Shown here: positions 8,815 to 33,282 of the stretch, one piece after another
Layout: the number at the start of each line of letters is the position of its first letter
Position numbering within the stretch: the first letter of the stretch is position 1
Source: Perkinsus chesapeaki ATCC PRA-425
Taxonomy: Eukaryota; Protista; Perkinsozoa
DNA: 64,000 nt
Assembly: GCA_013115145.1 (NCBI GenBank)
Contig: JAAPAO010000129.1
Location: 3,001 to 67,000, forward strand
Direction of reading: 5' to 3'
The notes under the pieces: model-generated
What the model was told of the DNA's origin: nothing
Seen by the model: only the letters and a program-made list of their open reading frames with translations
Database searches by the model: none
Program-made: the position numbers and the translations under genes

Positions 8815-11800
8815 ATGAAGGCAAGTGCTGAGAAGGCCACTAAGGATAAACCTGTCATTCCTGATAGTAGGCTGTGGTAGAGGGAACACTAGGTACCGCG
8901 GCGTGCCTTCAGAAAAACGATTGATGCATCTTCGCGAGAGCGCCGCTAAAAAGGTCGAGGAGCTTGCAGATGCTGCTCATATTGCGGAACAGAGAGGTAA
9001 GTGGGTATTAATTAGTGTACGCCTATCAGTGAGATAGAGATTAGTAGTGTGGTGTAATACCACGTTGAGTTTATACTATATATAATCACTGCTGTGTGCA
9101 AACGGTCTAATGCGTGTTGTCATCGCTATTAGTGTGGTTCATCAGTAATGTTTGTTGTCCCTCAGCTAAGGGCAAGAAAAAGGGAGGCTTTGACTTGGGT
9201 TTCCTGGCATTGAAAAAGCTGGCAAAGGACGACAAGAGCCGAAGTCTCTATGAACGGCTCGGCGGGGACCTCAGCCTTGAAACTGCTGTTGATATGGTTT
9301 ACTCCAAGGCGGTCAAGGACTATAGGACCAGGTTAGGGGTGCTGCCTATGAAGGTGATATGATAGGGTATACTTCAGAGCCTATTTCGAGAAGAACCCGC
9401 AAAAGATGGCTCAGATAAAGAAGAAAATGCAGCAGTTCTTAACGGGTTTTCTGGGTACGCAAGTCGAGTGGGCGGTGGTGTGTGAATGTCGTTGCTGTAG
9501 GTGGACGGACGCAGTATGATGAGGAGAACTTGAAGCCAGCTCATTACTATCTAAATGTTACTGATTATCACTTTGATGCTGTACATGAAATGTTTAAGGA
9601 GGCATTCCACAATATGGGCGTGAGTATACATACCATATTTCCGTCATATTTCCGGACTGACCTCCACCTTAGCGGTATATACGCTATTAAAGGCACCTCT
9701 CGACAGGTTCATCCCGATGCTATACGAGACGGTATGCAGAGGATAGGTCAGGCTAGGAAGGACATTACTGCCGGATGTAAGGGCAGCAGCCTTTGCTACT
9801 ACAGCCTAAAGGGGGCGTGGGGATAGGTACGGTACGGATGGCTGTGGCACGGAGGAATATAGAGTTTGATAAAGGGGTGTTGTGGAGGCGTCTGGGTGGG
9901 CTGGATGGGTTTCGATTGCTCATGGATAAGGTATATGAGCTTGTATTGAGGGATCCAAGGTTGAAGCTACTTTTTAAAGGTATATTGCGCAGTTACGGTT
10001 GTTATTGATATTGTGGTGTGATAGGCTATGATATTGAGAGGATTAAAAGGGCACAGACACTCTTTATTGGGGAGGCACTTGGGGCACCTAAGCAGTACCA
10101 AGGTAAAGCGGTGCTGAGGTTAAGGGCTACACTATGCTGATGCTGTAGGTGCGGACCTTGCTATGGTGCATAGAGACATGGGCCTAAATGATTATATATT
10201 AGACTGCTTCTTTATGAACTTCGGGAAGGCGCTTACCAGTAAGTGCCTTATCCAGTATATTGAGATATCATGGTTATGGTAGGCATGGGAGTTGATGATG
10301 ATACGCTTGACCAAGTTATGGTAACTCTTGAGGGCTTTAGATCTGGTAAGTATTGCAAGGAGGGAATGCCCACAGGTTTAGCATTGTGAGGGTGATGTCT
10401 CTTAAGGGTCTTAAATGGAGGTTTTCACATGAACAATAATGGTATATTATTATTGCAGTGTGAATTCATTACTACTGCATCGCGGCATTCATCGTGTATA
10501 CGGCAAGATTCATCACACTGCGCATTTGCTCTATCTCCTCTATTGTTGTTCTTGACGTAGTCTTTGTTGTTGTTGTGGCACTTCAAGCGGTGAGAAGTAA
10601 TCAACGTAATCATTGTGGCCTCCCAGTAATGGGTTGGGATTGGGTTCTGAGCTAAGGGAATAGATACGTCCTGAGAGAAGTGCAATTATTACAAATGAAC
10701 TCAAGCTAACAACGATACTGCAGTAGACAGCAATTGTGTGACAGCGGCATGCATTCTATTTAGTAATATTCGACATACAGTGTATAGAATAGTTAAGTTA
10801 GTAATGATCTTGTTATATCATCTTCACATTGCTCTAACAGTTGTTAGTATTATATCAGATATACTTGGGAGGCAAAGAGGTATATCCTCGGCAGCTAAGA
10901 TAGTGGATGGCAAGAGTATACTGGACAGGTGACTCTACAACGCTTAGTTACATTTATTTCCCAGCTTAAAGCATCTTCGTCCACTTTTCAGAGTCGGCGG
11001 TCAAATAGCAGTTGAGTCCATTGTTGAGACCATGTTCTCGGGCATACTGCGAGATCCCCGGGTGCTCTACTTCTTCACATTGAATGGTATGGTTATAGAC
11101 AAGCTCAAGGAGAATGTGGTAGAACTGACCGCCATGCCGCCGCCGCACCGTGCCGACTGCTACTGTGGCTGCTTGTAGGTGATGGTTTTGGTCGGCCTCT
11201 TTGGTGGCCCGCGTAAATACGATTTATCCAATATTAGTAAAGTCCATTATCCTATTAACATAACCGACTTTCATGTCGACTGCTTCCTTGAGAACCTCAC
11301 TGTTGCCTGCGTGCTGAATGAGTTGGATGAAGCGCTCACTGATGATATAGCAGAGGCTGTGGCGAAGGTCAGGCCTAGCATTACCATGGGTAGGATCTCT
11401 TTAGCAGTCATTTATTCTGCTGCCATGGCGCTCTCATTGCCTCTTGTTGAGATGAGTCTTATGATACCTCTCCCAGGTTGCACAGTAAGGTTGGAGTTGG
11501 CCAGGAAGCGCACAGAGTCGGCCGGCACGCAGGGCTTATGGGCTCAGATTGGGGAGCACCGTGGCCTCGAGACATTTATCGATCGCCTTTATGACTGCTT
11601 GCAGGATGATGATAGGGTTAAACACTTCTTTACCGGCTCTAAACTTGAGGAGCTCAAGAAAAATCAAGGTAAGGTCGGAGAACTGTAACCGTAAGATACG
11701 CCTGGCAGGTTCCTATTTGATGGAGATGTTTGGCGGCCCGAGTGACTACACCGGTCGGGACTTGCCTACGATACATGCCAATATAAGAGTATCCGATTTT

Positions 11801-14800
11801 CACTTCGACACGTTCCAGGAAATCGCCATGAGACAACTTCGAGGTCTCGGTCTCGATCCGGACGCCGTCGATGAATGTATGTTGATGTTGCAGTTGTTTG
11901 TTCTTGTTGAGCAGCCCTGGCATCCTCAGGCATGGTGCTGCTGGAGACTGTCAGGGACGATGTGGTGAATCCAGCTCTACGTGACCATGATGTGTTGAAA
12001 GTGCAGCAGGCCGCCAATCGCAAGCCTCTGTATGTTGAACGCCACTCTCACCGCTTGAAGTGTCGCGCAGAAACCCTAGCTCAACCTTCCGCTTCGAATC
12101 ACCACGAGGAAACACCGTAGAGCTGAAGGGCTGCGGTTGTTCGAAATTTTGTACGTAGTATTAAAAGTGAGTTGATTATAGGCTATTTCGGGAGTGATAC
12201 GGTTGACCATCCCAATCCTTTGAATCCTGTGATTCTACCCATATGCTCACAAGTCCTTACTCATCATCGGTATGTGATACTGCAGATATGATAGAATAGG
12301 CGGCGAACGTGCAGTTACACAGCTGGTTGATGAGCTGTATGGCAAGGCCTTGACAGATGACAGGCTTAGGAGCTTCTTTGAGAAGAATAAGGCAAAAGTA
12401 AGGGGGGGTGGGGCATAGCACCTTCGCTATGTACTCGTGACCATCTTACGGCTCACAATTCCTCTCCCACAGTGCTAAGCCAGTTTACGCTGTGACGCAA
12501 TGTTTCACGAGCGTTCATAGACGTTAAACGTCTGACGTTCTCTTTATGGCTCAACGCGACTACTTTCAGAGTCGTGCTGCTCCAGTGGGCTGCTTCGTAG
12601 CAAACTGTTTGAGTTTCTTCTTCTTCTTCTGCATAGGTTCAATCAATAAAGAAGAAGATGACTCAGTATATATGTGGGGCAGTTGGTGGGCCTTCAGCTT
12701 ATGATGTTGCCGATATGAAACCAGCCCATTACGCTATGAACATTACCAGCTTTCACTTCGATGCTGTTATAGAGATCCTTCGGGTTATCATGGGGCAAAT
12801 GGGCATGTCGACGTCCGATGCGGCGCAAGTGTCAAAGTAGGCTTCTTGGGGGCACCGCGTGGAGGTGGAGCTGCTGCTCTTCAGGGCATTACAGGGCGCG
12901 CGGGAAAGTGTATGCACCGGTTACATTGTACGCACTGAAGTGGCCAGGAGGAGCCTGGCTAAGGGCGCTGATCAGATGTTCCGGAGGTATCTAGGAAGTA
13001 CACTGAGTGTTCGAGGGGCTAGTGATTTCAGGCTTGGTGAATCGGAGGGCCTCACTAACATATTCAATATGGTCTTTAATATGGCTGTCAATGACCAAAG
13101 GATAAAGCACTTCTTTGAAAAGGATGTGGATAGGATAAAGCAAGGGAAGCTGACGTATATCATAAGCCAGCTTGGAGGGCCCAAGGCCTACGTCGGCCGG
13201 GACCTGCTGGATATTCATAGGGATCTCGGGGTAGTGATAAGGGACCTGCTGAAGAAGATGATGACGTAGTTGTTCAGGTTACTGACTACCACTTTGACTG
13301 TTTCATTGGTATATTCGGTAGAGCATTGCAAGGGGCTGGAATCGACGATGGCACCATTGATGAGGCCCTTATCACCTTGGAGCCACTCAGACGGTCAATA
13401 TTAGGAAGAACAGAGGAGGACGAGTAACAAGACAGACAGAGCTACATCTGCGTTCGACTTGTGGAAGAGCACTATACATAGGAATGGACAGTCTCGCCCG
13501 ATGAGATGGGATCCTTTATTTCTCTTCGTTTTCCTGTAGTTCAATACGTGCCACTGGTGTAGCCCAACCTTAGTAACGTACAGAGCTCCGTTTGGAATTG
13601 AATGACTCGCCGCTGTTCAACCTCGGCATGTATGAGGCATCCTGCCAGGTTCCGCGCCCTTGCCTTTAAAGACGGTGAATCTATGATAGAAAGAATCGGA
13701 GGTTAGGCTACTATTGTCGTTCCCTATGCGCATGCTGCCGTATAGGGGACATGAATTTGGAGACGTTCGTGGAGTTCACATTCCAGTTGGCAGTGAAAGA
13801 CGATCGTATACGTTATTACTTCGACAAGAGCCGGTCTAAAGTGAATCAGATAGAGAAGAAATTCTATCAGTATTTATCTGGAGTATTTGGAGGACCGGTA
13901 AGAAGGAGGACCACGGCAATTTCGCGGCGCGTGACTCGCAGTGTCGGCCCCTCAGGTCCAGTATAACAGCGCAGATTTGAAACCAGCTCACTACGATATG
14001 AATCTGACTAACTTCCATTTCGATGCCTTCCTGGAGGCAATGGCGGCCGCAGCGGTACAGATGGAGCTTTCGGAGGATGTTGCTGATGATGCTATAGTTA
14101 TAGTTAATAGAGTTCGAACAGATGTTACCACAGGTAAGCTTACTCATTTCTACCAAGTTTTCATGTTGATACCTCTTTGCCGACGATCCTTTGTCGAACC
14201 AACTTGGTTGATTGATCCTCCGTAGTGGTGTCTTCAACGCTGACCTCATCTGGTCCTTTCTCTCATCATCTGTAGCCGAGGGCGGCGCTAACTGTGTACA
14301 TTTCCGTCTCACTCACAGTTGCAGCAATTCACTTAGCTCCTAGGGCTCTCCCTCTAGGTTATTCTATTCGGCATGAAGTAGCGACAAGGCGAACGCACGG
14401 TATGGGTGAAACGCTTTATCAAAGATTAGGTGGAACCGACGGTCTCACAGACTTTGTGAGCCGGTAAGACTATCGATGCCCGCTCTTTGGTGAGTAGAAG
14501 TGGTCGTAGACTTTACGAAGTGGTCGAGCGAGACAAACGCATTAATAACTTCTTTGGAGCTGCCAAGCTAGCTGTTGTAAGGAAAGGACAGACGGAGTTC
14601 CTTGCACAAGTAAGCTGATGCCCATAATACAGATCAATTGCCGAGAGTTGCCTAGGCTCTTGGGGGTTCTGAAATGGAGTACAAAGGGAGAAGTCTAGAG
14701 GAGATACACTCGGTATGGATCAGCAGTTCCGTTACCTTAGGCTTTCGCTGCATACATTGGTGGCTTCGTGTAGGTATTGTCGATGACAGACTACCATCTC

Positions 14801-15002
14801 GATTCTTTCTTAAATGATGTGGCACGGGCATTAAAGTGAGCACTGATCTCGCCGCGTTGCTGCAGTAGTGTGATGTTATGTATTCGACTTCAGGGATCTC
14901 GGACAAGACGATGAGACCGTTGATGAGGTTATCGTTAGCCTGGAGCAACTGCGAGGTCAGATCCTCAAGACCTACTACGTTCGAATGGGCTATCAAGTGT
15001 GA
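8815..15002 (+). CDS. Multidomain globin: eight tandem group-I truncated (2/2) hemoglobin domains
   Basis: Eight repeats of (L/I)(Y/W)xR(L/I/V)GG...D.R...F...GGP..Y....H....T..HFD; proximal His F8 present in all eight. All three inter-pair junctions splice in frame by GT-AG rules. Start codon tentative; stop TGA at 15000-15002. Confidence 0.88.
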
Positions 15003-15179
15003 CTACCTTGAACAAGGCTTCAGCCTACCTTCATTGCATTCATCACATGCCTTTGTTGTTGTCTAACTGGGAAAGGTTATTGTGTTGTCAATAAAGCTGT
15101 AATTTAATCGTACCGTTGCAGTGATTTGCAGATAATAGCAATAGGTCATTTCTCCAATACAGGACAGCTTAGCTTCCTG

Positions 15180-18100: not shown

Positions 18101-21100
18101 CTCGGCTGATTGCACTATTAGGATAGGTATGGATGATGAAGCTGCCTTGGATGACGGTAAGCTATGCAGCATTACCGCCGCCGCTACCTTCATAGGGAGT
18201 GCCTCAGGAAGTGGCGGCCTTATAATTCTACCATCATGGGGCATATGTGGTAGCGATGAGCCCATCTTAAACACGGTGTTCAGTAGGGGGACTACACTAT
18301 CAGGCACCAGGCAGGATCAGACATCGCCACTGTTGATGTGAGACTGGGCTATTAGGTACTCATCCCAGACGGTACAGTTCGAGGCCGGCATACCACAGCA
18401 AGTTGGCATATTCAACCTATGCTGGTGTCCAGGAAGCTCTGCTACATGCACAGAGCTGTCAGACTACCTGGTCCCTGCTGGGACGCTCAAGTCCAAGGGT
18501 CTCACTTCACATACTTCCACTCAAGTAACGCAGCCTCGCCCTCCCTTTCCTTTACCCTCGGTGGTAGGTCTGCTACCTTCGAGTTGCCTGCAGACTTTTC
18601 GTATCGGGCGATGTGACGGTGTCAGATCGGATAATTGCGATCGACTCCAGCACCGGTCGTTGTGGGCGAATAGGCACACGTGAGAGATTGGCAGTGCCCG
18701 TCTGAGGTCATTGTCCTGTCTCAGGCACATATGGAACGCATGACAACACCTTTGATAGTCCGGCTAATGGTGGGTTGTTCATCGACGGTCAAAGTTACTT
18801 TGGTGCGTCTGCCCTCAACTCCGAGACCAACACTATAACCGTGTCTCTGGGGGTACACTACAGCCCGACGCTACTAGACATTTATGAACCTTATGCCTCA
18901 GACTCCTCGAGTGTTTGGCAGCTATAAGCTCTGCCACTGTGATGGTGTTAGTGATGACTGCGGCAGCGCTGATGACTTCTTCAGCAATGCCGGCCGTATA
19001 GTCATCCGGGGGCCATCATTCGGTAAGTCATTTCCTCTGTGGTGTGATGCTACCTGGACGACGACCTTTAGGTGATTCTGTATGGCCCTGTGATCAAGGC
19101 ATGTCTTGTCTTCTGGATATAACTGCTGATGGATTTGCAGAGAGTGATGGGGTATTGTTGATAAACGAGAACGAAGACTGTGGGCTGCTGAGGACTCCGG
19201 TATGCTATTACCATTGAAGGCCGCCGCTACTGCTGCCGTTCAGAATTCATCACCGAGCTACCTTGGCACAATTGATGCCCTTAACGCAGAGCAAACACAG
19301 GCCACCTTCATAGTCAGTGAAATAGAGTGGCCAGGTCGATACAAGGTTAGAATCACACTAACACTCGTTAGCCTTAGCCTTGGAGTTCATCAGGTCTGCT
19401 ACTGTGCGTTTGTCAGCAGCACCAGTGGAAGACTGTGTGATGGGTCTGCCGGCATGGTGGGTCTCAGTCGGCTTCCAAGTCACCTCACAATTTATCTCCT
19501 CAGGAGCACTTTGAAGCCCCTATTGGTACTGTCGTTGTAGCCGGTCGTATTTCGGAAATCAGCATCAGACAGGCTCCTTTCAGTAAGCTTTGTTACCCAT
19601 CCGTGGTGGCCCAGTCAATGCTCCCTAGGTACCGCTCAAGTTGCCTCCATAGGAGTGTATGCCATTACCTCGGGCGGCTCGGTGGTGTGTTCGGCCCTAG
19701 CCGGACCTACCGTCAACGGAACCGTTCCCACTCATGCCGAAATTCGCTTTGCATGTGAGGATGTCGATGGACTAGGAGGTAGGCCGCCTGTCTTCGGTGA
19801 TGGGAAGCCATATTTTAGGTGTGACGTGTCTCGGAGTTCATCAGCCCAGTGACTCGCTCATCGCTGGCCTCAACTTGGTAGAGTGTATTGTGTCATTGTC
19901 CCCTCCCCAATGGCAGCTTGTAAGGTTCACATACCCTTACTGGCGGCGCAAAACTTGACAACAGCCCATGTCTGGTGCTTCCACACTCAGCAGTGCCCGG
20001 ACACCGAGGAACAATGCTCAGCTCTCCCACTTAACGGGGAGGGTGTCAGAGTGCCACTTCAACCTGGGATAAGTAGGGCTTGCTCAGTAAGAGGTCCGGC
20101 CGTGATGCCGTGTACAGGTACACAGCGGCAAGAGTTCGAGGCGATCATCCAGGTGTCTCTGTCCATCTATGTACCCTTCAGTGGCCTGCATCAGAGCAAC
20201 TATGGTAAATATGGATGGGGTAAGCTATGCGACCCTATGCCTCCTTGTTTGTAGGTACACGAGATTGGGCTAGACTCAAGATCGGCTACGAGGAGGACTG
20301 TAAGCCTTTGACCCACCGCGCGGCACTGATCGCGAAATCAGGTGGTGGCTCCCTGGCAACCTCTGTACTCGGCCTCAGCTGTGCGAACGCTGTCATCTGT
20401 CTCACCCCTCCAACAAGTATGAGCCTTCTCGGAATGACTTGGTCAAATATCACCATCACTCGAGTGGGAAGCATGGCCGCATGGGCAGTATAAAGTTCAG
20501 TATCATTCAGGCCACCCCAGCTGGTGTAGAAGAAGGAATGCATGTTTGCTACTGTGACAGACTAAGGCTCGCAACTGGTGCTTGCTATGACTGGATCAAC
20601 ATAGGTATAAGGGTCAAGCGGAATTCTATATCATCGCGGATACCTCCTGCCTATCTAGGTTCAATCACCATTGGAGGCCCTGTAGTGGATCCCACAGCGC
20701 AGCCCTTAGTCACGAATCCAGTAGAGCTCACCACCAGTCTCATCATCACCGGCCGTATGCTGGACCCAGACAACCGTATCCTCCTCGTGGATGAGGCGTC
20801 TTCCTGTGGCCTACCGCCATCGAACGGCTCCTTCGCCGCCGGTAGCGCCACACGGGTTTCGCGTATCTTTCAAGACTGCTGTCTGTCAGGCCTAGCCTTC
20901 CTCGAGGTCCACGCTATGAGCAACCTCTCTGACGGAACCCAGTCCCAAGAGTTCCGTCTACCCCAGCTGACCGCGTTGGGACTGTACCGTGCCTGTTGGT
21001 GCGGCACAGCTCCGTGCGACGCCGCATTCCTCTTTCCAGTTCAAGTTGGTCGAGTCCTGGTAGAGCAGAGGATCGACTGTGCTGTTGGCAGCTGGTGGGC

Positions 21101-24100
21101 CACTGGTGATTGCTCCAAGGCGTGTGGCTCTGGCACGCAAGTCCTCCGGAGGAATATTATGGTAAATCCTAGAGGCGGAGGGACGCCCTGTCCCATCGAG
21201 GAGCTCCTCACCAAAACCGTGCAATGCAACACTGACCTGTGCCCGATTGCAGAGGTCCAGTCAGCAGTCACAGTCCCGACCGACATCTCGGCAGGCAGCG
21301 CCTTCAAGGTGGTTATAGACGGTGACAAGCTATCCCCGGCTGAGGACCGAATCATGTTACTGCCATCTACATCAACTCAGTGCGGAGATGACAACGTCAC
21401 CCATTACGGAGGGGCAGCCTGTGATTATGAAGGCCATCACGCTAAACGATTGGTGTGTGGCGACGGCGTATCGAGTATTCGTATAACAAGCGCGGCATCC
21501 GTGAGTCTCATGTCTGCTGCCCTGTAGCCTATCACCATACCTGTTCAGGTTCGGATATGTGTATGTGACTATGACTATACCGCTAGTGAGTCACTTGTTC
21601 TTCACTGGAGACCTTCATGATCATGGTTTCGTAATTTCAGGCAAGATAGCCACATCCGGTACCGTAGCCTCGGCGACGGTGGAGCCGTGCAGCAAGGTCT
21701 CCCACTACGAGCTGCAGCCTGCCTCTGGTGGGCTCATAAAGATAAATCCCTCCAGTGACTTTGGGCTCATTGTCGAGCCCAGTACGACAGGCCAGAAAGG
21801 CAGCTCTACTTGGCCAGTCGTTGTGATTGCCGGCCTAGTGTGCGTGCTGGCCATGGCTGGAGCTCTGGCGCTATACCATCGTTCAAAGCGAAAGGAGAAA
21901 TACAGTCCTGTAAGTATTAGATGAAGAGCGGTAGATTAGAGAAGCCTCTCCACTGTTAGGATCCCGATGGTGAACCAGCCTCCGACGCCCCTAGTGCCGC
22001 GATGATCGGGGACGATCTTCCCAGTTTCGACTTCATCAAGGCTTGGGACGACTACTACGTCTCTATAGGCTACAGGAGAGGTGCCACCATCATCACCGCC
22101 TCTTCATTATCCAGCAGTCCAGGCACGGCCTTCGAGATGTTCGGTATAACACCCGAGGGATTCACTGCTCCGAAGCCCTTGGCAATATCTGACATGGTCC
22201 CCACTCCTCCGCGCAGCCGTGCAGTAGGCCATCAGTGCGCTTGGTCGGGGCCAACATTGGATCTTTCTTCTTGTTTAGGGGTCCTTCAATGCCGGCTATG
22301 GCTACCCGTATGATACCGGTCCTTCCTCATTACCACAGCTGATGGTGAGAGACATAACCGCTGGCATCTGTGAATAGTTGGCATCATACAGGCACCCCAG
22401 ATGATGATGCGTCCAATGACCCCTCCGACAGAGTATGCTCTACCACAGCCAGCGCCTATGCTGGCCCTGCCCTACTATGATGAGGATGGGGGGCAGTATG
22501 ATAGCTACCAGTACGGTAGATCAGTAGCTTCACCATCTCTGGACATGTCCCTGCCGAGGCCACTCACTCCTCGAACTGCTGCTGCCAGTACTGTTGTGCA
22601 TTCGCTGATCCATTAATCTCACTTAGGTTTCCTCAACCAGGAGCTCAGCCCTCTACCAGCTTGGCAGGACCCATCTGATAGGGAGCGTGACCAGAAGGAT
22701 ATTAAGAGCAGTCCTGGTAGGCATCCCCGGTGCCCCTCGGCCATGCGTGTTGCCAAATAGTTCTAAGCGCGACGGCTGATGGGATCGTTGGAGATACAGG
22801 GGGCGAGGAAGCAGGCGGCGAAGCGACGCAGTCCGGAAAAGTTAATGGCAAGGTAGGTTTCGGAGATGCGATGAACCCTAACGCAACGGTTATGGCCGGG
22901 AAGCTTGGCCCAGGAGCGTTGTCTTGCCGATTGGCAGGTTACAGCCTTGATGAGGTCCGGCACGAAAGGCCTGCGAGCCCTCGGTAAATCATTTACTAGC
23001 CATAACAAGCAGATGTTCAATACGCTGATGTCGAGGAGCAAGCGGGCGGAGGTCGCATCCGTTGTCGACGATGAGAAGCCTCCTGCGGTAGGCAGCATGT
23101 CTCCTACTGCCTCGCGTACTTTGACCGCGCTTTGCTGTTCAAGGTGCCCCCCACTGCTTCCAGCAGCAAAGACTTGTTTGAAGGGTCGCTTCCTGACCGC
23201 GAGGGTTTGGAAGCTCAGGCAGTGGAGAGGGAGGATCGAATGGTGGGTGGCAGTCGGGAGCATTTGCGTTACTACGTTCGCGTTTCGGTAGGATGTTGGC
23301 CGGTCACGGTCGCCGAGCGTCCTGCCTCCTCCTGGTGCTCCAAAAGTCCTACCGCTTGCCGAGCTGGAGTCGGAAACTCCGGCAAAGGCACAACCTCTGG
23401 CAGCTCCAGATGCTTTGCCGAATCCGGACGACAACAAGGAGAAGTCACCGCCGAGTGAAGGGGGGGACGCCCAGAAGGGAGCGAAGGCGGAAGTAACAGA
23501 GACGGCCGAGGATGGGGTTGCACGGGAGGTGGATAACTCGGTCAAGCCCGAGACGAAGGTTTGCCAACTAGTAGGATGGTAACTCTTACCACTTTACCTT
23601 TCAGAAGGAGGAGGAGCACAGCGCCGAGGAGAAGGATCCTCTTGAGCAGACCCATAAATCTGTTACCAGCCTTCTGTCTGCTGGCTTTTCATCCCGCCGA
23701 GGCTCTACGGAGGTATCTTACTATTAGCGAGTATAACTGCGGTCGAGGCGCCCTGTCAGGATGATGCTTTGGCTGGCAACACTGTCCCTTTGCCTGGTGC
23801 TATCCCCGCTGTGGATGAGCCCCTTACTCAGAGAGAGCCAGCATCGGTGAGATTGGCCTGGATGCCTCCTGTCCGGGGTATCTGTTGTATCAGGCATCCT
23901 CCACCACACGGAAGGCTCCTCCCCCTCCTATCAATTCAGTGGACAATAACGACAATGGTGAGCCTACCTCCTTTCCAGCGTCCATTCTCAGCAGCCTCAG
24001 GTTCCTTGGTAGATCCTCTAGACTTTTCAAGCACTAGTAGCATGCTCAAGTACAAGCCGATCGAATCACTGATGAAATCGCCAAAGGGAAAGTAGGTGCC

Positions 24101-29341: not shown

Positions 29342-30866
29342 TTAATGATATGAGGGAGGATACGAGGCGGAGGAAGTCAACGGACTCCCGGAATACCGAC
29401 TTGAACAGACTGTCGTAGACGCTGTCGTCGAAGCATCGCATACCATATCAACCAAAGCCTTGACAGTTCGTCGTCTAGACCTCATCCGTTCACCGACTCG
29501 GTCATACAAATGTTCAAGTTGATGCCGATTGCCGGACTCATGGCCGTCTAACAGAACCGGTAATTGTTGAGCATAGAAGTCCACAAAGGTGCTATTGACA
29601 TCGTTGTCACAAAAGAGACGTTCGGCCTCCATTCGAGGACCAGTTGGAGCGTCACCAGCGTCAAGCTCAGCAAGCAGGAGCATCACTTCGCAGCTGCTGA
29701 AACTGTTCATCGAACTAAATCGATCGGTCTCAGGATGAACTTGATCGGCTATCCACAACGGAGTGTCTACAGAAGTTAGCCTTTCGCATGGCCGCTCAGT
29801 GAGAAGGCTCCGTATAAAGTCAGGAGGGATGACACCACCACCGGGGCAATCAAAGACACCAAGCTGGCACGTTGCAACAGCATTAGCTAATTTAAGGGCG
29901 CGCTGGCGATTGTGTTGTCGCGATAGCTTCTCCGTCTGAGGCTCGAATATAATCTCGCGAATGACGGGGTGGATGTAGCACTGAGTGAAAAGGAGAGCGA
30001 TAATCCTGAAAATAACAGACATGACCAATTAGAATGGAGGAAATATCTTACCCGATACTCCACATATCAGTTGAAGGGCCACAAGCGTTGATGTAAACTT
30101 CGGGGGCAACATAGGGATGGGTACCGCATATCCGCCCGTGAGTGTTGGCAAAGCCGAAGTCTATCAGCTTGAGGACGCCGTTCTTAGCAAAGATGAAGTG
30201 TTCTAATTTAAGATCTCGATGAACCACACCTGCTCGATGAATATGCTGCACTGCCCGCCAAATCTGAGCTAATATACCAGCAGCCTGCTCAGCCGTCACC
30301 GTCTTCCGTCTTTGTTGCAACCACGAGTGTAAGTCACCATCACCATCAATTAATTCGAGCACCAACCAGACTTGAGTGTCATCTTCGTACACTTCATAAA
30401 GGCGACAAACGTTAGGATGAGGCTCGATCTGAAGCATCGCTGCTGCCTCCGAGTACACCAAGTCGGCAGCATCCTTCCCAGCCATATCGAGCTTATCAAT
30501 CCGCTTAACAGCGAACCGCTCTCCGGTCGTCTTTCGCCGAGCGACACAGACAGACCCAGAGTAACCCTTGCCGAGGCTTTCCTCCAGGTCAAAGTCTCGT
30601 GTGATGTTACGGCCCTTGAAGACTCGTGGATCATTATGCCTTCCACCGCGAAGAATAGGGACGCGACAGGGACCCTTCGATTGGCCCCGAGGGTTCCGTA
30701 TAACCACGCGGGGGCGGCGATCCTTACGCGACTTGCCGTGCCGCGACTTGAAAGGAATCCAGTTAAAAATGCCAGAGAAGCAATAGCACGATGTTTGGGA
30801 GACTGCCATGATACCAAAAATAACTGATATAATGAAAGATAGCGGTGCTAGATTGGAAGGGGACAC
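29342..30866 (-). CDS. CAMK/CDPK-like Ser/Thr kinase with N-terminal hydrophobic segment (one intron near 30004-30049)
   Basis: LGKGYSGSV, FAVKRI, HPNVCRLYEVYED, HRDLKLEH, DFGF, YVAPE, DMWSIG|IIALL, DFIRSLLTERPCERLT (subdomain XI). Confidence 0.85.
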
Positions 30867-31009: not shown

Positions 31010-32746
31010 TTACTCCGATCCACCTCGCACCAGAGCGTACACGACATAGGCGCCATAGATGGTTAATAAGGATGCGCCCATACGCTTGCTCAGAATCCAC
31101 TTGTTCAACTTCACTGTAGCCAGAAATAAAAGTAGGACAACGGTGAGTATGAGAATATACTGCGGTAATGTACTGGTAGCACCAGTGAATAGAACCTTCT
31201 TCCCCATGGCCAGCTTGAGGGTCCATGGAACGCCCAGACCGAGCATAATGTCGAACACATTAGAGCCAATTGCGTTGGACACAGCCATGTCACCTTCTCC
31301 TTGCTTTGCCACCGCTATCGATCCAAGTGCATCGGGTACACTAGTGCCCGCAGCCAAGAACACCAGGCCCATAACGAGAGCTGGAAGGTTCAATATGCAG
31401 CCGATTCTATTGCACGCATCAACCATAAGATACGTCAGAGCTCCAATCCACAGTATAGATAACGAAAAGAGTATCCAGTACCGTGATGGGCCGGGCATAG
31501 TGTACTCCCACAGTATGACGAGGGGATCTCTTACCCACTTCCTCCACCCCTTCAGCTCCTCCTTCTCCTCCTCTTCTATTTTCCCTTCTGCCTCAACAAT
31601 GGTCGGCTCAGCCCCCTCAGTAGGCCCAGGGGCCGGGGCATAGACTTGGTGATGTATATCGATTATTGTATGGCTCTTAGCTCTGAACTTATTAACACCG
31701 TACTGGTAGGATACACGCCGATGAGGATGGTAACCGTCCAGCGACCCAGAGGCAGAATGTCTTCTTTGACTGCTCACCAAGCTGTCGACAGAGAGACCCC
31801 TGGGCCTTTGGGTTGTTGTCTCTTCGGTGGCAACATTTGGGAGCTCCGCAGCTGGAGGCGAGTCCGGGCCACCAGTGCCACCATCAGCGGCAGGTGATGA
31901 GGAAGGAGGGGCTTCCTCAATGTCTTCGCTTTCTTTTTTATCATCTTCTACAGTGGCCTGCTTGCCGGTATCGACTGTGTCTACAGCCCCGATGGCAATG
32001 ACCTCCACATCGCCGTTGCGAGCGCCCACCTTAAGAGCGATGGCCTCGCTATACTTCATAAATACACAGTATAGCACATAGGAGAACACCATGAGCAGAG
32101 CTTCCCAAATGACAATTTCCTCATCTAGTAGAACCAGACTCATCTCCGATATGGCAATAACGTAGAATATAGTATCTCTCGTTAGGGGGTACCAGCATAT
32201 CTTAAGAGACTGACCAGCAAAGAGGCAGGTGGCTCCGATGATAACGAGGATGTTGAATATAGCCGAGCCGATAATAGTACCGACACCACCTTCATTAACG
32301 ATTAAAAAGGTGGCCACGATAGAGGTGAAGAGCTCAGGAGCCGATGACCCAGCAGCCATGAAGGTGGCACCGGCCACATCCGGTGATAGCTCTAATGCTT
32401 CGGATATGGCCTCGAGAGCTATAACGAAGTAATCATCACACATAGATCCCAAAGCCTTGAAGGCATAAAGCATAAGTATGAAGGATATAATGAGATCTAG
32501 AGGAGCAGGGAGGACCGAGGTGCCGGGGGAGTCAGTGTCGCAGTCCATTATACCACTACAAGAGCAATCACCAAATACCATACCGAGAATAGAAGCCTCG
32601 TCTTCAACACCGCTCAGCTGTCTGGTAGAGGCACTGTCGGCCAACACTAGACATGGTGATAGGAGAGCCGATGCGATCACTGCTTTATACCTGAAAGATA
32701 CGAAAGAGGTCGGCTTGGGGGCAGATGGGGTATCCCACCTTGCCAT
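31010..32746 (-). CDS. K+-dependent Na+/Ca2+ exchanger (SLC24/NCKX family), intronless
   Basis: Alpha-1 repeat VAGATFMAAGSSAPELFTS; alpha-2 repeat GLVFLAAGTSVPDALGS...GDMAVSNAIGSNVFDI; central acidic loop. ORF is open to 32809; likely start MARWDTP at 32746. Confidence 0.92.
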   Translation of the reverse strand: MARWDTPSAPKPTSFVSFRYKAVIASALLSPCLVLADSASTRQLSGVEDEASILGMVFGDCSCSGIMDCDTDSPGTSVLPAPLDLIISFILMLYAFKALGSMCDDYFVIALEAISEALELSPDVAGATFMAAGSSAPELFTSIVATFLIVNEGGVGTIIGSAIFNILVIIGATCLFAGQSLKICWYPLTRDTIFYVIAISEMSLVLLDEEIVIWEALLMVFSYVLYCVFMKYSEAIALKVGARNGDVEVIAIGAVDTVDTGKQATVEDDKKESEDIEEAPPSSSPAADGGTGGPDSPPAAELPNVATEETTTQRPRGLSVDSLVSSQRRHSASGSLDGYHPHRRVSYQYGVNKFRAKSHTIIDIHHQVYAPAPGPTEGAEPTIVEAEGKIEEEEKEELKGWRKWVRDPLVILWEYTMPGPSRYWILFSLSILWIGALTYLMVDACNRIGCILNLPALVMGLVFLAAGTSVPDALGSIAVAKQGEGDMAVSNAIGSNVFDIMLGLGVPWTLKLAMGKKVLFTGATSTLPQYILILTVVLLLFLATVKLNKWILSKRMGASLLTIYGAYVVYALVRGGSE

Positions 32747-33282
32747 AGAAGAGAGAGCGTCGTTTCCTGGGTCACGGAAAGAACACAAGGAAACACTAAA
32801 ACAGAGCAATGAGGCCCAAGGCTGCCCTATGACCTAGCGAACGAACGGTATGAACCAGCGAGCAATGGGCGGCCTAGCCTGCGGCAACCTGAGTACTGCA
32901 AATTGAAAACATCTGGTACGATGGACAAAGCACACAAAGTTCACTTTGTGAGGTGCCCGAATCATTCCTCGGTGACAGAAATGGCACTCGATAGTGATTA
33001 TGTGTATAAATAAGCAATAGTATCAGATAGAGGAGTATCAGCGCAAGATGGTAGCAACGGTGACCCTAGCACAAGGAAATGACATTGCATCACCCACCGT
33101 CTATTTTTCAATACTAGTTGATACTAGCTAAGCCTGTGGAGAGCAGCTACGCTCAAGCGAGTAGGCAATGATCCTGGAAGATAGAAGGGGGTTACAAAGA
33201 GTCCGACGATTCCGTGGAAAGAGACAAGATGCAAAAATGTTGAGCGTTGAGGAGATGCAAGAATGGCTAAGATTGCCAAGAT

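Follow-up and report, generated by a model that had tools for sequence, protein, structure and literature searches.

A Perkinsus chesapeaki gene for eight truncated haemoglobin domains with two conserved haem pockets in alternating order

The window examined here is a stretch of 64,000 nucleotides (64 kb) from contig JAAPAO010000129.1 of Perkinsus chesapeaki, a parasite of clams. On its forward strand, at 8815..15002, it carries a gene for a chain of eight truncated haemoglobin (trHb) domains, in which 29 exons separated by 28 GT-AG introns encode 1131 amino acids and the stop codon TGA occupies 15000-15002. The domains (D1 to D8) alternate between two types, A at the odd and B at the even positions, which differ in the residues lining the haem pocket. 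This alternation is conserved in a family of relatives from Perkinsus, the dinoflagellate relative Oxyrrhis and marine metagenomes.

The gene was recognized from many short plus-strand frames between 8815 and 15002 which match the Pfam family PF01152 (Bac_globin) exon by exon, single exons scoring above its cut-off. The exons were joined via GT-AG introns by hand and by script, with the help of motif searches and reading-frame checks. Most introns are short: 22 of the 28 measure 40-87 nucleotides, six are longer and the median is 51.5 nucleotides. The longest (513 nucleotides, 10346-10858) places the final codons of D2 downstream of it, and the five further long introns (169-256 nucleotides) lie at 8997-9165, 12030-12285, 12398-12636, 13424-13648 and 14134-14357. 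For the intron between D4 and D5, a donor after 12116 was rejected since the resulting linker would count 52 residues. The donor after 12029 (GTATGT) is preferred because only that choice yields a family-typical linker of 24 residues, and it gives a gapless match with Perkinsus olseni. With this choice all seven inter-domain linkers of the model have family-typical lengths. An AATAAA hexamer at 15090, 88 nucleotides past the stop codon, is a possible polyadenylation signal.

The gene model aligns gaplessly with four partial P. olseni GenBank proteins at 77-87% identity, namely P0166 (79% over 451 residues), P0016 (77% over 454), P0020 (82% over 336) and P0103 (87% over 112). Together they cover residues 79-190 and 319-929 of the model; the putative start codon and first two exons lie outside all these orthologue fragments. 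The database and Protein Data Bank (PDB) searches were run with individual exons, or with alignments of such exons, as queries, while the joined translation was computed from the coordinates and used in frame checks and in local alignments to fetched proteins. The full-length product of the gene was not among the 150 representatives of the profile search, and it was also missing from the 31 matches of a word search that started from a paralogue of 46% identity; the closest database proteins are only the P. olseni fragments. As the protein collections yielded no full-length product, the P. chesapeaki record in GenBank may lack an annotation of this locus or have it in several pieces. A scan of the 64-kb window with the gathering thresholds of Rfam gave no match.

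Intron positions mostly differ among the eight homologous domains, which suggests that much intron gain or loss postdates the domain duplications. Only two positions recur: a phase-1 intron falls in the A-to-B linker of units 1, 2 and 4, within the Gly or Cys codon that starts the GCTVR-type motif, and a phase-2 intron is found near the N-terminus of D3 and D6. Inspected by eye, the 76 N-terminal residues reveal no obvious signal peptide. The domains, the A-to-B linkers and the pocket residues are mapped in Table 1.

Table 1. Map of the eight-domain trHb gene, with the haem-pocket residues of each domain (aa, amino acids).
Feature	Coordinates	Strand	B10	E7-E11 (coordinates)	F8	G8	Remarks
N-terminal region, Lys-rich, 76 aa	8815..9257	+					exons 8815-8866, 8913-8996 and start of 9166-9331
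Domain 1, A type	9258..9769	+	Tyr	IKKKM (9415-9429)	His	Val	
A-to-B linker 1, 24 aa	9770..9891	+					AGCTVRMAVARR...; contains phase-1 intron
Domain 2, B type	9892..10866	+	Tyr	IKRAQ (10042-10056)	His	Phe	
Domain 3, divergent A type	10993..11388	+	Phe	LKENV (11104-11118)	His	Phe	
A-to-B linker 2	11389..11547	+					GCTVRLELARK...; contains phase-1 intron
Domain 4, B type	11548..11967	+	Tyr	LKKNQ (11653-11667)	His	Phe	
Domain 5, canonical A	12296..12915	+	Tyr	IKKKM (12646-12660)	His	Val	
A-to-B linker 3	12916..13032	+					TGYIVRTEVARR...
Domain 6, derived B type	13033..13403	+	Phe	IKQGK (13135-13149)	His	Phe	
Domain 7, A type	13695..14129	+	Phe	IEKKF (13850-13864)	His	Phe	
A-to-B linker 4	14130..14425	+					TGYSIRHEVATRR...; contains phase-1 intron
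Domain 8, B type	14426..14969	+	Tyr	VRKGQ (14577-14591)	His	Phe	

Helix numbering was anchored on the trHbN of Tetrahymena pyriformis (PDB entry 3AQ5), with the exons 13033-13230 of D6 and 12637-12834 of D5 as queries. Three mutant entries fix the decisive columns, 3AQ7 (Y25F) being B10, 3AQ8 (Q46E) E7 and 3AQ9 (Q50E) E11, and each of them differs from the wild type at one aligned column only. A profile of 21 exon pieces (A2), from which the piece 9707-9775 was left out after its misalignment by MAFFT in an earlier version (A1), aligns ungapped with 3AQ5 over positions 1-109 (E 2e-27). Against the HbN of Mycobacterium tuberculosis, a constant offset of the same profile reproduces Tyr33, Leu54, Gln58, His81 and Val94. 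Among PDB chains, the profile matched those of group 1 with E values of 2e-27 to 1e-12 and those of group 2 at ~1e-6.

These comparisons, together with predicted structures, assign the eight domains to the group-1 truncated haemoglobins (trHbN). AlphaFold2 models were built for the P. olseni orthologue fragment from alignments of 40 rows each, and they show the 2-on-2 fold with a predicted local distance difference test score (pLDDT) of 92-94. In VIA-align comparisons the modelled fold matches eight different group-1 proteins (Z 18-20, root-mean-square deviation (rmsd) 1.1-2.4 Å). For a modelled B domain, the superposition on 3AQ5 has Z 19.9 and an rmsd of 1.2 Å over 115 residues, and that on the M. 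tuberculosis HbN has Z 19. The proximal His F8 occurs in all eight domains and in 100% of 337 family domains; with Phe CD1 (~90%) and the Gly-Gly motifs it points to haem binding by the domains.

A preliminary description of this locus had read the distal pockets as alternating along the chain, and its residue assignments hold in the numbering anchored on 3AQ5. The E7-E11 strings that it gave are correct for all eight domains, and the alignment with 3AQ5 and its mutant entries places them in the E7-E11 columns. From D1 to D8 the residue at B10 is Y, Y, F, Y, Y, F, F, Y, so that Phe stands in domains 3, 6 and 7 as described. The pairing of Gln E11 with Tyr B10 in three even domains was likewise recovered, since the HbN-type pocket (B10/E7/E11) is found in D2 (Y/I/Q), D4 (Y/L/Q) and D8 (Y/V/Q), D6 having F/I/K. 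At E10, Lys is present in three of the four odd domains (D1, D5 and D7, Asn replacing it in D3) and in no B domain; the THB1 type of Chlamydomonas also has Lys at this place. E11 of the odd domains reads M, V, M, F, and the G8 series from D1 to D8 is V, F, F, F, V, F, F, F. Overall sequence follows the same division, with identities of 28-44% between odd domains, 32-42% between even domains and 22-32.5% between odd and even ones.

Measured against the family, D1 and D5 are canonical A domains and D2, D4 and D8 canonical B domains. The other three depart from the norm (B10/E7/E10/E11): D3 with F/L/N/V, D6 with F/I/G/K and D7 with F/I/K/F. In the P. olseni orthologue, D3 is likewise devoid of Lys E10, while D6 still has Tyr B10 and Gln E11.

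The family was delineated by an exhaustive profile search which returned 5087 relatives, among which over 100 proteins have at least two globin units. The best matches are P. olseni and P. chesapeaki proteins annotated as hypothetical (paralogues with 41-55% identity), one P. marinus protein, complete transcripts (MMETSP0469) of Oxyrrhis marina, a dinoflagellate that branched off early, and many marine metagenome contigs. The relatives carry 4 to 16 globin units, and the pattern ABABABAB is found in 31 of them. Some GenBank models of P. olseni and P. chesapeaki (P0151, P0154, P0167, P0168) have 11-16 alternating units and up to 2375 residues, or an N-terminal Got1/Yippee match; they may be longer paralogues, annotation-merged tandem genes or fusions with neighbours.

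Residues were counted in ~330 distinct domains of relatives from P. olseni, P. marinus, P. chesapeaki paralogues, O. marina and marine metagenomes. At E10, A domains have Lys (116) or Arg (30) in 92% of 158 cases, whereas B domains have Gly, Ala or Ser in 142 of 176 (81%) and Lys or Arg in 5 of 176. E11 is apolar in 157 of the 158 A domains (99%), Met accounting for 108 (68%) and Gln for none; in B domains it is Gln in 128 of 176 (73%). In ~30% of the A domains Met E11 is swapped for Phe, Leu, Ile or Val. At G8, the A domains are mixed (Met, Val or other) and the B domains have Phe in 155 of 177 (88%). Tyr B10 is common to both types (A 83%, B 69%), and His F8 is present in every A and every B domain. 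The proximal side also separates them: a Tyr follows His F8 (F9) in 127 of 160 A domains versus 0 of 177 B domains, and an Asn four residues past F8 is invariant in A domains. Within the B type, Tyr B10 and Gln E11 occur together in 116 of 176 domains and, where Gln is missing, B10 is nearly always Phe or Trp; such co-occurrence is the pattern expected of a hydrogen-bonded pair.

The strict odd/even alternation of two pocket chemistries, which the preliminary description had proposed from a single gene, is thus conserved family-wide and far beyond chance. The residue counts stem from one old A/B split kept by selection and not from independent events. In a FastTree phylogeny from which B9, B10, E7-E11 and G8 had been masked, all 52 sampled A domains fall in one clade (support 0.97), and the domains of any one position from D1 to D7 group together in a clade that spans Perkinsus, Oxyrrhis and metagenome proteins. 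These positional clades across lineages imply that the eight-domain order was fixed before the lineages and the paralogues diverged. On this phylogenetic evidence, the A and B subtypes are old paralogues, and the octad predates the split between Perkinsus and Oxyrrhis.

In addition to the pockets, the linkers distinguish the joint within an A-B pair from that between pairs. The A-to-B linker has 24-25 residues in 129 of 139 family junctions and follows the consensus TTGCTVRME-ARK with invariant Gly and Arg, while the B-to-A linker usually has 21-24 residues and its sequence is not conserved. The predicted structures agree with this contrast in linker conservation. For the A-B pair D5-D6, the model reached a mean pLDDT of 93.7 and a predicted template modelling score (pTM) of 0.82, with one continuous helix running from helix H of the A domain through the linker. 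For the B-A pair D4-D5, modelled at equal alignment depth, pLDDT was 91.8 and pTM 0.53, the linker scoring 63-72 in pLDDT. The chain is thus predicted to consist of rigid A-B pairs strung as modules on flexible B-A joints. The earlier suggestion that each pair is a unit gains substance from this predicted rigidity (pTM 0.82 vs 0.53) and from the conserved linker of fixed length. Subtype-specific conserved positions also exist on the surface, outside the pocket. Electrostatic docking of A onto B was considered and rejected, the difference in net charge (A -2.2 vs B -4.7) being too small.

Of 138 junctions in the family, 98 have a Cys, within GC[TS], where the A-to-B linker starts. In the window's gene, three of the four A-to-B linkers contain a Cys; GC[TS] is confined to linkers 1 and 2, and linker 3 reads SVCTG.

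We consider it somewhat more probable than its negation that the locus is an intact gene for a cytosolic chain of eight trHbs, arranged as four rigid A-B modules on flexible B-to-A linkers and acting as a high-capacity haemoprotein that handles oxygen and nitric oxide (NO). Since both subtypes keep the proximal His, both very probably bind haem. The B pocket resembles that of HbN, which is O2-avid and NO-dioxygenating, with a Tyr B10/Gln E11 hydrogen-bond pair, an apolar E7, Phe G8 and loss of the basic E10. The A pocket is lined above the iron by apolar residues (Ile E7, Met E11, a small apolar G8), keeps the family's usual basic E10 beside the haem propionates and has its own proximal motif (His-Tyr and the Asn at F8+4). 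Within group N, apolar residues at E7, E11 and G8 go with low O2 affinity and a polar Gln with high affinity (PMC4720485). Furthermore, Tetrahymena work, as cited in that paper, indicates that a pocket of Tyr B10, Gln E11 and apolar E7 stabilises O2 and supports NO dioxygenation. On this view, B sites would hold O2 tightly and carry out the reactions that depend on oxygen. A sites would differ from them in ligand affinity or kinetics and offer a second reactivity or a ligand reservoir in each module. The HbN-type B pocket and the apolar A pocket together make it likely that A and B divide labour, and conservation shows this to be selected; the relative affinities, the NO dioxygenase chemistry and any A-B coupling are putative.

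Several points weigh against this interpretation. The A domains keep Tyr B10 in the large majority of cases, so that they may bind O2 tightly too, and some domains might have Lys E10 (present in D1, D5 and D7) or Met E11 as an iron ligand. D3, D6 and D7 depart from the norm, and the eight sites do not fall into two clean classes. The rigidity is predicted for the P. olseni orthologue fragment, from alignments of 40 sequences, rather than for the protein encoded in the window, and pTM reflects confidence in the relative placement of domains only indirectly.

The preliminary description went further and proposed that A domains are hexacoordinate electron relays. Taken beyond that description, the idea is that the A haem would be bis-ligated by His F8 and either Lys E10 or Met E11 and, held at a fixed distance, would re-reduce the ferric B haem of its own pair after each NO-dioxygenation cycle. 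Lys E10, which serves as sixth ligand to the haem iron of Chlamydomonas THB1, THB2 and THB4 (PMC7082302), is indeed present in D1, D5, D7 and most family A domains, and a rigid pair, as predicted, could give the fixed haem-haem geometry. Re-reduction also needs some route, as no reductase, cytochrome b5 or ferredoxin domain was found fused in the relatives scanned; the Got1 and Yippee matches of the longer relatives look like merged neighbouring gene models. However, Lys E10 does not stand as a special mark of A domains, since a basic E10 is the default across the trHb family, where it supports haem binding through the propionates (PMC4720485), and it is the B domains which lost it. The more distinctive A residue is Met E11. 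Moreover, Arg takes the place of Lys at orthologous positions (D1 K19/R3, D5 K15/R6, D7 K12/R9), an interchange which fits a propionate salt bridge better than iron ligation; to our knowledge Arg is not a haem iron ligand. Ferrous THB10 and THB11 are pentacoordinate despite their Lys E10, and no sequence feature is known that determines whether Lys binds the iron (PMC7082302). Asn at E10 of D3 speaks against the relay within the window's own protein, and the lack of a fused electron-donor domain in the relatives scanned lends it no support either. The canonical states of A and B also vary independently within pairs (72/33/39/18, odds ratio 1.0); the test is a weak one, but the joint retention that would point to obligatory coupling was not found. 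The electron-relay reading is not supported and we regard it as improbable. If it were true, a His F8/Met E11 site would be a cytochrome-like site within the globin fold, and each A-B module would work by itself as a redox pair, which would make it the first relay formed by two globin domains.

The same statistical independence is what would be expected if the eight domains were uncoupled beads, the two subtypes only widening the range of an O2/NO buffer and the chain raising the amount of haem per polypeptide, much as polymeric globins do in invertebrates. The predicted flexibility of the B-to-A linkers would suit such a chain. Many other protists, among them Diplonema and the ciliate Pseudocohnilembus, have homotypic multi-unit trHbs without any alternation. 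Against this stand the alternation, the positional orthology and the conserved, predicted-rigid linker, all kept since before the Perkinsus/Oxyrrhis split, a constraint that exceeds what independent beads need; we hold this alternative to be rather unlikely. Alternatively, the A-B modules could work like the alpha-beta dimers of haemoglobin, a fixed interface transmitting ligand-linked changes and making binding cooperative. A rigid hetero-pair is predicted, both subtypes have His F8 and conserved subtype-specific positions are also found on the surface beyond the pocket, but the pocket states show no covariation. Cooperative binding between fused trHb domains has no precedent known to us, and we judge this possibility very improbable. 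Our preference remains for the O2/NO-handling chain of A-B modules with a division of labour between its two pockets.

The rest of the window holds other coding frames. At 31010-32809 on the minus strand, a frame without introns encodes a K+-dependent Na+/Ca2+ exchanger (NCKX), and a protein kinase frame (30048-30866, minus strand) adjoins it. The NCKX frame is 100% identical to the GenBank protein FOL47_001247 of P. chesapeaki, which identifies the species and overrules the metazoan origin that its nearest Atlas clusters had suggested. Downstream of the globin gene, the plus-strand frame 20439-21527 contains a spondin-like thrombospondin type 1 domain (PF19028, E 1.5e-10).

The interest of the octad lies in the pairing of its pockets. 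Truncated haemoglobins have been studied almost only as single domains. Here a natural experiment places two pocket designs (Lys/Arg E10 and Met E11 vs a small E10, Gln E11 and Phe G8) next to each other four times, and the paired pockets have been kept since before the parasites (Perkinsus) and their free-living dinoflagellate relatives (Oxyrrhis) diverged. As a shellfish parasite, Perkinsus meets reactive oxygen and nitrogen species of its host; a putative multi-haem NO/O2 protein with several paralogues may aid its survival in that host.

The best solved relative of the domains is the trHbN of T. pyriformis (3AQ5), which shares Tyr B10, Gln E11 and His F8 with the canonical B domains. It differs in being a single domain with no A-type counterpart and in having Gln at both E7 and E10, whereas E7 is apolar in all eight domains of the window. 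The HbN of M. tuberculosis (1IDR), an NO dioxygenase, has Tyr B10, an apolar E7 and Gln E11 in common with the canonical B domains. However, it consists of one domain and carries a pre-A tail, its G8 is Val where B domains mostly have Phe, and E15 is mostly Leu or Ile in the domains described here, unlike in HbN. On the A side, the closest parallels are the His-Lys hexacoordinate THB1, THB2 and THB4 of Chlamydomonas (4XDI, 6BME), with Lys E10 as in D1, D5, D7 and most A domains. THB1 shares the group-1 fold (profile match E 2.5e-17) and has Gln at E7 and E11. The A domains depart from it by Ile E7 and Met E11, and their Lys is often Arg in relatives.

Covalent chains of globins that arose by tandem duplication are known from invertebrates, such as the nine-domain haemoglobin of Artemia and the two-domain haemoglobins of Daphnia and Ascaris. 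They resemble the octad in this respect; they belong to the 3-on-3 lineage, occur in animals and are oxygen carriers. Closer in kind are the multi-unit group-1 trHbs reported in silico from protists by Hade et al. (2017, IUBMB Life 69:479), as quoted in PMC7475203 and PMC7082302, and the THB5 of Chlamydomonas with its four consecutive 2/2Hb domains (PMC7082302). Tandem multi-unit trHbs are thus known already, and relatives of the present gene stand in GenBank as hypothetical proteins. We found no description of the strict alternation of two conserved pockets or of a predicted rigid A-B module in the accessible literature, in which the study of Hade et al. is represented by the papers citing it, nor any paper on Perkinsus or Oxyrrhis globins in the same literature. 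Like the other members of this class, the P. chesapeaki protein joins tandem group-1 units in one eukaryotic polypeptide, eight of them in one reading frame. The other multi-unit trHbs examined (Diplonema papillatum, Pseudocohnilembus and several metagenome proteins) repeat one pocket type, whereas the Perkinsus-type family alternates two in the fixed order (AB)4.

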